A DNA stretch of 64,000 nt from Pavona decussata. Its lineage: Eukaryota. The notes under the pieces were generated by a model. The model saw nothing but the letters and a program-made list of their open reading frames with translations, did no database searches and was not told the DNA's origin. The translations under genes and the position numbers were made by a program. The stretch is taken from NCBI GenBank assembly GCA_977016875.1, contig CDRNST010000144.1:310001-374000 (forward strand). The letters run 5' to 3'. How positions within the stretch are numbered: position 1 is the stretch's first letter; every line of letters begins with the position of its first letter. Shown piece by piece: positions 13,637-18,439 of this stretch.

Positions 13637-15524
13637 GGTTACAAAAGCAGAACACAAAAGCAAAAAAGCGATAAGCTTATAAGAGTTGTGAGTTCTTCAG
13701 AACAGTATGTTTGTTTCTTTAACTTTACTTTTGGGCAATTTTTAAATTTATTGTCTTTTAGTGGCCGTTTTTGCCTTCCATATTTGTTTTGATCTCGCTA
13801 ATTATGTAAGTGATCATGCAAAGTTTCGTAGTCGGGAAGGAATCTGGGCAATCGTAAACAAATATCTTTATCCTGTCCACAAAGATAAATTGGATCTAAG
13901 AGATATTTTTCCTATATTCCTTTCCCAAATTTTCTACTTTTTCCTCCTTGCCTTGGGCTGTTTTCAAATCTACTGTCTTTTAGTTCCATTTTCACCTTCC
14001 ATATGTTCTCAATCTTTCCAAATGTGTAGTTACAGAGTTTTGCAGTCAGAAAAGAATGCGAGTAATTGCAGTTTCACGCAACAGCAATACAAATTGTCAA
14101 CTTGAGTTGCCACAAATAAGTTCGCATGTTTCACGGGAAGTTTTACAAGAGTAAATTGGCTTCAAGGAAACTTTTTCCATATATTCCTTTAAATCTTACA
14201 GAATGTGTTAAATACAAGTATCGTATGAAATTTATCAATGATCTGGAGACTGTGACAAAAGTCAACATACGGTAAGCTTGCACTTGACAAAGGGCGATGG
14301 AGATCATGACATACATGTTACATACTTGCATCAAGTAGATCTTCATAATAATAATTGCAGGAAAACAGTTAGACGAAGAGAAAGAGGCTACAAAGTGTAT
14401 AAAGGTAGGAGCCAAGAACCATCTAGGATAAATTTGAAAAAGATTTTTAAGGCAATGACGAAACGAATGATTCGAAGAACTCTAAAATTAACACTCAGGA
14501 ATTTTTCTCCCCCTTCATCTAGACTAAGCATAGCAGCTAAGGCCCTATCCGCACTAGCAAAAAAAATGTTATTTAGACAAATGTTCTGTCATCACGAACA
14601 CTTTACAAGTGCGGATGGTTTGGTGCAACTTTACAAAATTTGGTTGAGATGAAAAAAATTTCAAAAGCACCGCCGCAAAAATTTGCTCGGGGTAAAAACT
14701 GGACAAAATTGACTAAATAAACAAAAATGTATTTTTCTTGTCAAGCACTTGTCATAAAGCTAGTAGTCCTTCCATTAGCTTTAAGTAGGGTTACGAAACT
14801 GAATTTTAATTAATCTTTTTACCAAGTGAACAGAGCGGTTAAAATGAATCCCGGCAATTACTGGAACTTAAATCCTACAGCAAACTTCGCTGGGTTTCCC
14901 TATAAGCAGGCACAAAATGTCAGGCGATGGAGTATCCCTACATATGACGAGGACCAGGCAAGTTCAAGTCATGCACTTGGCTTGATTTTTCAACGAACGG
15001 TGCAAGAACCATGGTTTCAGTCTGTAGGCGAAGACCCTGAAATTCATCCCGCTCCATTCTCCCACCACTGTTACCTCTCTCCAACACGAATACAAGGACC
15101 TGTCTTTTGGCATATTCACACAGATACTGCCCATGTTACATGCAGTTTTATCGAGAAAAAAAAAAGAAAGGAGGTAGACCAAAAACAATTAAACAGGGTA
15201 AGCAAAATTTTAAATCCATGTAGGAAACAGAGAAAACATCGCAACACATCCAAGATACTGCACACACTGTGACAGGAAAAGTTGAAGAGTTGGAAATGGA
15301 CAGTCTCCACACCTATCGGATTGAAGAGGGCCATAAATTTCAGTTCACGCAGGAAGTCAAAGAAGACTTTAAATGCCCAATTTGCAAGGATATCCTCCAT
15401 ACGCCTTTGGAGACATTCTGTGAACATTATTTATGTGCAGAATGTTATGGTCTTCCCCTGTATGCAGGACTGAACTTAACTCAGCTGACCACATAAAAAA
15501 GCCCTCACGAATGGTAAGTATAGG

Positions 15525-15684
15525 AAATCGTATGAACACGAGTGCATTTCGTGATTTATGGGCACGAGTGATGTTTTGAAAGTTCTCAAAATTACACAAG
15601 CCGTAGGCGAGTGCAATTTGAGAACTTTCAAAACATCACGAGTGACCATAAATCACGAAATGCACGAGCAGGTTCATACGATTT
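15525..15684. repeat. ~160-bp imperfect palindrome at the Crypton terminus
   Basis: aatcgtatgaac...tgatgttttgaaagttctcaaa / tttgagaactttcaaaacatca...gttcatacgatt around a gccgtaggc centre. Confidence 0.9.
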
Positions 15685-15927
15685 TTTATTTATTATATTC
15701 TCAACAAAATTACTCCATCGCGCTACTTTGCACGCCCTACGTACTACAAAAAACACTTCAATGGGTTCCAAAATGCTCACATGTTTTATTTGATCCAATC
15801 AAAAATGTAATGTTGTGACAGGTAAATCAAGCGTGAAGTATTTGAAAGTTTCTCAGAAAAAAAATTAAAAGCGGCAAGAGTACTTAAGCCTGCTAATCTG
15901 TTTTCAAATGTTTGATCTCAATCGGCC

Positions 15928-16739
15928 TCAGGGAATAACATTCTGACTTGCCGACTTTGGTGAACTGCATTGTCCCTGAATCATGTTAAATGTGACTTGA
16001 CAGTTGTGAAAGTTGTTCACAGTGAAAGCATGGCCGCTTGTTTTCACCTGTTCACACGTTGAAGTCGTTGCAGGAGAAGACCACATTGGTAGACCAAGAA
16101 AACTGCTGGAGGCTGCTGACTGTGGAGGTATGCTGATAATGTTTGAAAGCTGTCGCTGTTCCTTCTCGCTACCTTCATCGTAGTCATGAAGAGAGTTTTC
16201 ACTTGCGTGGCCGGTCGCCTGGATTATCGACTGCATCTCGACGCTTGCTGCTCTGAGTTTCTTCACAACTGTCTTCCTTGCGGTGTGGTAAGTCAATTTC
16301 TTCTTGCTTGTTTCCAGAGCTGCGTTCTTGACGACGCTCTTCATCATATTGTCAATGCTGTCCCTTATTGACGGAGACACTTCACTTTTCCGTCGAGTAC
16401 CAACTTTGACTGGTGAAACTCTCGGAATCGTAGAATAGAGTACATGTAGTCATGCTCTTTTAAATAGCAGTCGAGGGCTGCCAGCATGGATTTTAAACTC
16501 TCAGGTTCGTACTCAAACCCGTCTTTTGTGCGTATTTCTGTGTAGAAGATTTGCAACATTTTATCGCGTTGTTCGTGCTCGTATTCTTCCATTTTTGGGT
16601 TTCCTTTTCGTTGAGTCGCCCATGTTTGCCAGACATTTAACCAGGTCAGTGTAGATTTCAACGTGTTTTTGTTTTTCGCATTTTCTTTAAGTTGCTCGAC
16701 AATGTTTTGGTTTGACAAAGCAAACCGACTGTCAGCCAT
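15928..16739 (-). pseudogene. Crypton tyrosine recombinase (DUF3504-like) with central deletion
   Basis: ORFs 16365-16793 and 15928-16380 give N- and C-terminal parts joined out of frame; the central catalytic-Arg region is missing. Confidence 0.8.
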
Positions 16740-18439
16740 CTTTTTTATAATTTGGTGTTCAAATTTGGCGCTTCCCCGGTGTTTCCATGGCAACTTCTCC
16801 GTATTGCACTCTATAACCTCTATTGCAGTCTATAACCTATTTATGCATTCATCATTGACCAATCAGAAACGCGATATTTTGTCGAGTATATAATAATGAG
16901 GCGTATAGCAGAACTAAAACTCAGATGAAATAATTGTCTCTGTGAGTTAACCTATGAAGACCACATAAACCATTTGTGCAGGGCATAGTTGGCCAAGCTG
17001 ATGTTGCACTTCCTTCCACTTTTAGTACAGCAGCTGACCCCCCTTCGGTCACTTTGGCGCAAGCTATCGAACAGCTTCGTAGGGGAGATATCACTCCAGA
17101 AATGGAGCAGATTGGGACTTTGTTTCTTAAGTCCAAAATTAAATGAAAATGGAGTGCCAGCAGCTTCTTAAGGAGGCGCTGGGGAAGGCCTTGGTTCTGG
17201 AAGTCCCAGAGGGTGTGGCCCTGGTAATGAAGGCTGATATTTGACAACCATGATTTCGATTGAATAAACTGCGCAGGTACTAATAATATTAAAATTGACA
17301 TATACAGTATATAATAGGTTACAAAAATGTTAAAAAAGAAAGTAGAATGCATTTTATACCTTTGTTCCAATATGTAGGTGGTTCAAGAGGTGGGGCATTA
17401 AGATTGACAGTGAAAGAGCTCAACGAAAACAAAAGGCTCAGCAAATTGGTGAAAACCTTGACTGTGACATCTGGAGAGCAAGATCAAGAAACGTATATGC
17501 TGTTCCACCAGTCCAGTACTTCTAGGCTGAATATGCTACTCATTAACAAGACTTCAATAAGGGTTTATCACAAGATTTTAAGCAAGGTCAAAGAATAGTA
17601 TGGTAGAGAAAAACGAAAGAGGCTTTTCTTTGGAATTAGACATGACACTAAGTTAAAACATTTGCATGAAATGAAACATGACCTGTGAATTTCCTACAAA
17701 ATGTGTCACAATTTAGCAACAATGAACCGCGCCAACGCATCTAAAATCTCACCCAAAACCCGGTCTTTTAGCTCTCATGTCTAGCTTTCTTCAACAGAAT
17801 CGGTTTCTTGAGAGAAAGACAGGGTTTCAAATTGATTTTTTATCTTCATACTAGATTCATGCTGAACATGAATTAGAATCACGGCGACTGAACATCTGCA
17901 GGAAATTATTTATGGAACACGACTTTGGCAAACTTTGGCAAACGCAAAGATGCCGTAAACGGGGTTATCAAATCTCTTCAGTAGGTAATTTCGTTGTCAA
18001 AAACCCTTCCACTTACTTATGGTTAAGCTTGTAAATGATTATGCCCTTAATTCATCACAATTCGCTAATAATTATTTGGCTGAGTATAAAGGAATTTAGC
18101 TTCGTGTTTTTGTGCATGGTAATTTTCCCTTTCAAACTTTAGTACTGAAATAGCGCCATATTAAATTTGCATTATCATCTGCGAGGAATCCTTGAGCTAA
18201 AGCTTAAGATTACCGCTCAAATAGAGTCCTGTAAACAACATTAAAATTGTCGCTTCGTTGAAAGTGAATAAGCTACACTGGGAAACAGTCAAAATAACTC
18301 AACTTGCTCCAGAAGGTGGGCTGTAAACAATACCAAATCCTCGCAAACCGCTTTTAAGTCTGACCATCCAGGTTTTCTAACTGTCTTGTGCAAAACCAAG
18401 AGTGAAAAGCGCTTTATAATAACCTTCCAAAACCTTCCA

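Follow-up and report, generated by a model that had tools for sequence, protein, structure and literature searches.

Positions 15000-17471 of the 64-kb window of the Pavona decussata genome analysed here (C144:310001-374000 within the 602-Mb assembly; positions below are those of the window unless another locus is named) very probably represent the dead, truncated 5′ third of a Chapaev (CMC superfamily) transposase gene, split by a Crypton-like insertion. The remnants, all in plus-strand orientation, were mapped by tblastn, the queries being single exon-sized open reading frames (ORFs) taken from paralogues elsewhere in the genome. The paralogue exons matched the window collinearly with E-values from 1e-9 to 1e-23, the reading frame changing between pieces, which bears out the claim of an earlier note, made from the letters of this stretch only, that pieces scattered over several frames stand in RAG1 order, an order shared with Chapaev; the strings quoted there were all present at their places. 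The same note had described the locus as a hidden transposase gene. Homology to transposases was upheld, while the status of a gene was not, as the locus is a dead fragment lacking core and ends.

The first recognisable piece, at 15000-15150, is the C-terminal half of a Chapa/NZD zinc finger (EDPEIHP..FSHHCY..VFWHIHTD..VTC), matched by residues 56-104 of the copy on contig C47 (E 1.9e-18) and 56% identical to the C323 copy (E 4e-18); detectable Chapa homology starts near 15000-15027. Two zinc ligands are missing from this half, FCxxC being changed to FSxxC and the final CxxC being short of one Cys. The basic motif KKKKGGRPKTIKQGK follows at 15150-15200 in a shifted frame, according to three-frame translation, as a frameshift in an A-run near 15151-15163 puts the KKKKGGRPK motif into the other frame; across the family alignment, KKGGRPKK.KRG is nearly invariant. 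A linker and a C3HC4 RING occupy 15266-15517 (C15 RING exon, E 1.7e-23; Pfam zf-C3HC4_2, E 1e-5), with tblastn matches at 15164-15445 and 15266-15516. The two halves of the RING are in different frames, and about 25 nt have been lost in comparison to C15 (a stretch of 240 nt aligned with 265 nt of L032).

On the far side of the insertion, the remnant of a C2H2 zinc finger located 3′ of the RING was identified at 16897-16988 (E 1.2e-13), reading RRIAELKLR*NNCLCELTYEDH versus RLTAELTVRCKNCYCELSYEDH in C15, its first Cys replaced by a TGA at 16926-16928; the remainder of the RING exon, including this finger, was matched at 16890-17123. A conserved linker (DPPSVTLAQAIEQLRRGDITPEMEQIGTLFLKSK) at 16991-17140 continues in yet another frame (C15 piece, E 5.7e-18; match 16991-17188), and between 17142 and 17145 approximately 285 nt are lost relative to C15 (blastn gap). 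The tail of exon 2 (LLKEALGKALVLEVPEG...LNKLR), disrupted by two in-frame stops, lies at 17164-17276 (C47 exon 2, E 8.9e-10; match 17164-17277) and is followed by a conserved GT-AG intron of phase 2 at 17277-17377 (GT at 17277, AG at 17376-17377). This phase-matched intron had been proposed in the earlier note and proved real: its removal gives LNKLR-R-WFKRWGIK, and the C47 and C241 copies share the exon junction (LNKLRR / WFKQWGIK). The start of exon 3 (WFKRWGIKIDSEK..QQIGENLD) at 17378-17471 (C15 piece, E 2.3e-12; match 17361-17471) is the last detectable transposase sequence, and blastn homology stops at 17461.

The catalytic core is lost, as had been supposed: tblastn with the paralogue exons returned no match to core or later exons anywhere in the 64 kb, and the window copy thus covers roughly the first third of the coding region and no more. 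The 17-nt inverted end of the family was absent from the window with three mismatches allowed, and no ends of the window copy were detected by inverted-repeat, repeat-family and terminus-motif checks. The DNA of the fragment diverges by 24-34% from its nearest paralogues, which indicates that it is old. The fragment is evidently truncated at its 5′ end too, with two other repeat families directly upstream, namely one continuous copy at 14100-14540 (76-89% identity to its copies) and a second, unrelated family at 14535-14775 (72-79%). An unrelated high-copy repeat of ca. 404 bp (17519-17922) is situated 3′ of the fragment; its candidate matches number over 1000, with 91-92% identity, and copies on contig C240 form a tandem array with a period of 1647 bp. 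As judged from its sequence, the window locus is a dead relic, no part of which can be functional.

Chapaev DNA transposons were reportedly described by Kapitonov and Jurka in 2007, and the CMC superfamily, it is said, by Yuan and Wessler in 2011. Protein searches of the genome located about ten dispersed relatives of the window copy, with N- and C-terminal exons 1.3-7 kb apart and a multi-exon transposase gene containing several introns. The C47, C241 and C273 copies are 90-95% alike over ca. 5.2 kb (C47 versus C241, 93%), and both the C47 element (5275 bp, L059 2725-7999) and the C241 element (L060 2400-7621) are delimited by inverted ends and target duplications. The 17-nt inverted ends of these two elements, CACGGCGCTTTCAGAGC / GCTCCGAAAGCGCCGTG, start with CACGG, and ends of the CACGGCGCTTTCAGAGC type were present in C47, C241, C273 and a shorter C175 copy. 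The target duplications are 4 bp long (ATGG/ATGG in C47, TTAA/TTAA in C241), and the C175 flanks read TATG/TGTG. The core exon of C47 (..KLGGDHGQGS..) matched PF06918, DUF1280, with 48.9 bits (E 8.5e-13, cut-off 25), and that of C15 with an E-value of 9.9e-5. The C(2)C, LH and H(4)H motifs were recognised by eye as HPCLWC, PGLHISLG and HMLEEH, together with a GEQGxES glutamate motif. DUF1280 has been equated with Chapaev transposases (PMC3985635), the hallmarks of which are invariable CAC...GTG ends, target duplications of 3-4 bp and the C(2)C, LH and H(4)H motifs (PMC4079192). Genomic copies, to which the earlier note had looked for ends, target duplication length and core type, accordingly supplied all three.

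In the C47 copy, a single ORF of 363 amino acids carries, in order, ..HLMELCRICGEKL.., ..DVHPPRFCKKCH.., ..VFWEPH..ECKTC.., GGRPSKPKRGRGK, the RING and the C2H2 finger, and the Chapa alignment of the family contains nine invariant or nearly invariant Cys and His residues. No intact copy was found among the genomic copies examined; frameshifts or stops occur in the C15, C175 and C47 copies, in the last as stops and one frameshift. Only one database homologue carried a species name, a protein of the coral Porites evermanni with 27% identity.

The link to RAG1 runs through these relatives because the window copy alone is not significant, and the Chapa piece of the window itself had no match in Pfam or in PDB. 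The RING exon alone is not diagnostic, as UHRF1, TRIM31, BRCA1 and TRAF6 scored equal to or above RAG1. A 7-sequence Chapa profile searched against PDB, in turn, matched only the nuclear magnetic resonance structure of the RAG1 NZD, 21wb (E 5.2e-7), as well as mouse RAG1 102-223. With 14 sequences the match to 21wb reached E 2.6e-9 in one stretch across the entire domain, and that to mouse RAG1 101-217 reached E 2.6e-5, the next, unrelated PDB chain following at E 0.22. The profile combining Chapa, RING and zinc finger aligned collinearly, as one segment, with mouse RAG1 101-380 (E 1.4e-13). Pfam RAG1_imp_bd gave weak matches to two paralogues (E 0.02-0.03), at matching profile regions, and is precomputed on several database homologues, and a genome scan with Pfam zf-RAG1 (PF10426) gave no match, the controls not being detected either. 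The RAG1 core, PF12940, was matched neither in the window nor in the paralogues, with a sole whole-genome match on contig C11, and two core-exon profiles searched against PDB retrieved no RAG1 or Transib chain, even at E 10.

To judge from these profiles, the resemblance to RAG1 is true homology of a non-core N-terminal module common to Chapaev transposases and RAG1/RAG1L, and it is no evidence for a RAG1-type (Transib) core. The earlier proposal of a RAG1-type N-terminus on a transposase with a different core, similar to that of Chapaev or N-RAG-TP, agrees with the NZD-specific profile and with the DUF1280 core in the relatives. A RAG2-like kelch/PHD partner, which the earlier note had not seen, is absent here too: nothing RAG2-like was found beside the window fragment, and the 5.3-kb relatives are single-gene elements.

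The 1379-bp insertion noted earlier is real and is located at 15518-16896 on the minus strand, as indicated by empty sites in paralogues and by a multi-copy family of its own. In whole-genome DNA searches and alignments, the flanks were adjacent in the C15 and C175 paralogues (L032 3318 to 3321, L033 4633 to 4630), where the post-insert segment is contiguous with the RING, and the empty site aligned at the junction as ...CGAATGGT(TC)TGAGGC.... Joining 15517 to 16897 keeps the frame (RMV-MRRIAEL versus RMV-LRLTAEL in C15), and direct repetition at the insert junctions is limited to AA/TAA. The insert family comprises 89 match segments and at least about 20 copies, either dispersed or tandem, most of which span insert bases 1 to 1379. 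The insert in the window has an internal deletion of about 447 bp, as fuller copies hold about 447 bp more in the middle of the element.

The minus-strand ORFs of the insert (16365-16793 and 15928-16380) matched Pfam Phage_integrase (E 1.7e-4, the HxxR...Y C-terminal region of the profile) and QRICH1 (E 7.5e-4), and their nearest Atlas clusters were eukaryotic Phage_integrase/DUF3504 families. The region expected to contain the first catalytic Arg of the R-H-R-Y tetrad falls in the segment deleted from the window insert. The DUF3504 and QRICH1 domains descend from animal Cryptons, and Cryptons are present in sea anemone (PMC3212892). On account of the domain matches, the neighbouring families and this Crypton ancestry, Crypton-like appears to be a fair name for the insert.

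In its small size, multi-copy nature and apparent possession of only a tyrosine recombinase related to DUF3504 and QRICH1, the insert is similar to the animal Cryptons (CryptonA; Kojima & Jurka 2011, PMC3212892), and it likewise appears to lack long terminal repeats and reverse transcriptase. It differs from them by its ca. 447-bp internal deletion and by its inverted repeats, as animal Cryptons are described without terminal ones (PMC3212892). A hairpin of ca. 170 bp forms one end of the insert (15520-15689), with arms 15542-15590 / 15617-15665 that are 94% complementary, and 15520-15537 pairing with 15672-15689; additionally, a 21-nt inverted repeat connects 15690-15710 with 16876-16896. The hairpin part (insert bases 1-181/196) also matched alone at other genomic loci. 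Such hairpin units standing alone resemble a miniature inverted-repeat transposable element riding on, or captured by, the Crypton-like element. Eight Crypton-like copies were observed in a regular array with a period of ca. 4.5 kb at C105:649355-682877.

An intact element of the family would encode a transposase with a Chapa/NZD double zinc finger, a GGRP basic patch, a C3HC4 RING, a C2H2 finger, a linker and a DUF1280-type DDE core, and would be bounded by 17-nt inverted ends starting with CACGG and flanked by 4-bp target duplications. If it behaved as other DDE transposases do, it may have moved by cut-and-paste. Missing from the window copy are the 5′ end, one half of the Chapa domain, the entire catalytic core and both termini, and frameshifts, stops and internal deletions have accumulated in it. 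The Crypton-like element then entered the reading frame directly behind RMV, in the codon that follows it, separating the RING from the C2H2 finger, and the region was probably duplicated within the contig at a later time. A duplicate carrying the same insert is located at C144:682283, ca. 357 kb away on the same contig, and is 99.6% identical over at least 7.5 kb; the Crypton-like insertion preceded this duplication of the region. The match of window positions 12000-19543 to L034 (C144:677000-686999) is either a segmental duplication or an assembly duplicate.

Several observations weigh against the assignment to Chapaev and against its tie to RAG1. Taken alone, the window fragment returned the RING as its only Pfam match, no PDB chain, and no significance against RAG1. 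The assignment is transitive, through paralogues that are 37-56% identical in protein and to which the fragment is tied at E 1e-18 to 1e-23. For the Chapa domain, AlphaFold2 yielded a poor model, with a mean predicted local distance difference test score (pLDDT) of 66, and Foldseek found no match for it in PDB at E ≤0.001. The weak top Foldseek rows were the ZAD domains 7po9, 1pzw, 7ppp and 7pok, which recalls the likeness between ZAD and ZFa described by Hong et al. (2026, bioRxiv 10.64898/2026.01.24.700457) but is not evidence. A search around the C15 copy, a member of the closest subfamily (C15/C175/C323), revealed no inverted ends, and transposon membership of the window copy is drawn from its relatives. 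The missing ends around C15, together with the stretching of this copy over ca. 7 kb, the clustering of the C175 copies and the conserved intron positions, are features expected if the family, or the C15/C175 subfamily, were a host gene with introns that had been domesticated from a Chapaev transposase, and the window copy its duplicated pseudogene. This is very unlikely, however, since introns are common in the transposase genes of eukaryotic DNA transposons, the C15, C175 and C47 copies are all disrupted, and both inverted ends and target duplications are cleanly preserved in close relatives.

The collinearity of the N-terminal module with mouse RAG1 101-380 may also suggest a fragment of a true RAG1L gene with a RAG1-type (Transib/RAGL) catalytic core, which would bear on the history of RAG transposons in cnidarians, and one RAG1-core (PF12940) fragment does exist in the genome, on the other contig C11, near a RING ORF and convergent kelch ORFs. 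Yet the post-RING exons of the window (17164-17471) matched paralogues with DUF1280/Chapaev cores, the PF12940 and core-exon profile searches were negative for this type of core, the target duplication of the relatives is 4 bp and not 5 bp, and the 5.3-kb element has no RAG2-like second gene, all of which make a RAG1L origin highly improbable. A pseudogene of a host RING E3 ligase (TRAF-, TRIM- or UHRF-like), in which the likeness to RAG1 would be only generic RING similarity, is hardly credible. The RING exon alone does score UHRF1, TRIM31, BRCA1 and TRAF6 as high as RAG1 or higher, and Pfam detects only RING families in the window piece, but the pre-RING profile matched the RAG1 NZD alone (E 2.6e-9) and not only the generic ligases which the earlier note had set against its own reading. 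Furthermore, the module of the relatives lies within elements having inverted ends, target duplications and a Chapaev core, and roughly ten dispersed copies exist, to which the window is tied at tblastn E 1e-18 to 1e-23.

The C11 locus comprises the only PF12940 match of the genome (30.8 bits; L031, C11:1219333-1222596), a RING-bearing ORF and a CCHC knuckle on the same strand, and kelch-repeat ORFs convergent on the opposite strand. It is a candidate for a decayed RAG1L-RAG2L (RAG-like transposon) remnant.

Two elements of the earlier description were rejected. The string LKSYSKLR (14867-14890, plus strand), taken as the first CxxC (LCRICG) of the Chapa domain, is present in the sequence and gave no tblastn alignment even at E 50 with the closest paralogue Chapa exon. 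The proposed terminus TACGGCATC (17943-17957, minus strand) is situated 35 bp past the unrelated repeat at 17519-17922. Apart from the window and the 99.6% identical duplicate, the 20-mer ending at 17957 is absent from the genome, and its near-matches were no commoner than those of a reversed control. No valid inverted partner was found, as the pairing with 14268 (17/24 bases) falls inside the repeat at 14100-14540, which runs straight through. A loose, post-hoc terminus pattern gave one match, with 0.4 expected per window by chance.

Elsewhere in the window, positions 30001-34000 form a GC-rich block (50-54% versus ca. 38% around it). The surroundings of the C47 Chapaev copy hold further ORFs. 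Directly upstream (L059:773-2647, plus strand), an ORF of MULE-type transposase (Pfam MULE, 27.2 bits, cut-off 27.6) is followed by a SWIM-like zinc-finger ORF, and just downstream of the element (L059:8322-9827, minus strand) ORFs of 345 and 155 amino acids consist of tandem Ser/Thr/Glu-rich repeats of ca. 40 amino acids (..SPNIRQTEGQSHDPSMRETTSPSTRKHEGYSDD..).

The Chapa domain was described, and named after the Chapaev transposons of lancelet and starlet sea anemone, by Kapitonov & Koonin (2015, PMC4411706), and Chapaevs with Chapa and RING were already known from sea anemone (Nematostella) and lancelet (PMC4411706). With these, the relatives of the window copy share the order of Chapa, RING and C2H2, the DUF1280-type DDE core with C(2)C, LH and H(4)H, the CAC...GTG ends and the 4-bp target duplication; the window copy differs in being reduced to a broken 5′ fragment that lacks both core and ends. 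The structure of the RAG1 NZD has been solved and structurally tied to Chapa domains (Hong et al. 2026, bioRxiv 10.64898/2026.01.24.700457). Compared to the non-core part of RAG1/RAG1L (NZD 89-223, PDB 21WB; RING-ZnF dimerisation domain, PDB 1RMD), the family has the same order of NZD, basic patch, RING and C2H2, whereas its core is of the Chapaev type, PF12940 and a RAG2-like partner are absent, and the target duplication is 4 bp instead of 5 bp. According to alignment gaps, the long insertions between the zinc ligands of the vertebrate NZD are absent from the family domain, and Chapa and invertebrate NZDs likewise lack the long vertebrate insertions (Hong et al. 2026, bioRxiv 10.64898/2026.01.24.700457). 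N-RAG-TP of Aplysia californica (Panchin & Moroz 2008, as cited in PMC8355894) is likened here by its description only, as far as given in that citing source: it is mobile and carries a sequence similar to the RAG1 N-terminus outside a RAG1 core. Aplysia elements have been placed under Chapaev3 in published trees (PMC4411706).

The main inference drawn in the earlier note is correct, while its novelty was overrated, as Chapaevs with Chapa and RING were on record (PMC4411706) and Kapitonov & Koonin (2015) and Hong et al. (2026) had already reached the conclusion itself. The window locus adds only a relic and settles no open question. In this genome, a Chapaev transposase carries the RAG1 non-core N-terminus (NZD, RING and zinc finger) as a single collinear unit, in line with published work that takes this module to be older than RAG1. 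There is a small chance that the Chapaev lineages of this genome, with the full non-core module in one exon, are a closer living proxy of the donor or common ancestor of the RAG1 N-terminus than the published ones, or that C15/C175 is a domesticated gene; either of these, if true, would provide a tractable system for the role of the NZD-RING module in a transposase. The new copies with clean ends and target duplications offer material for comparative or biochemical work on NZD and Chapa domains.

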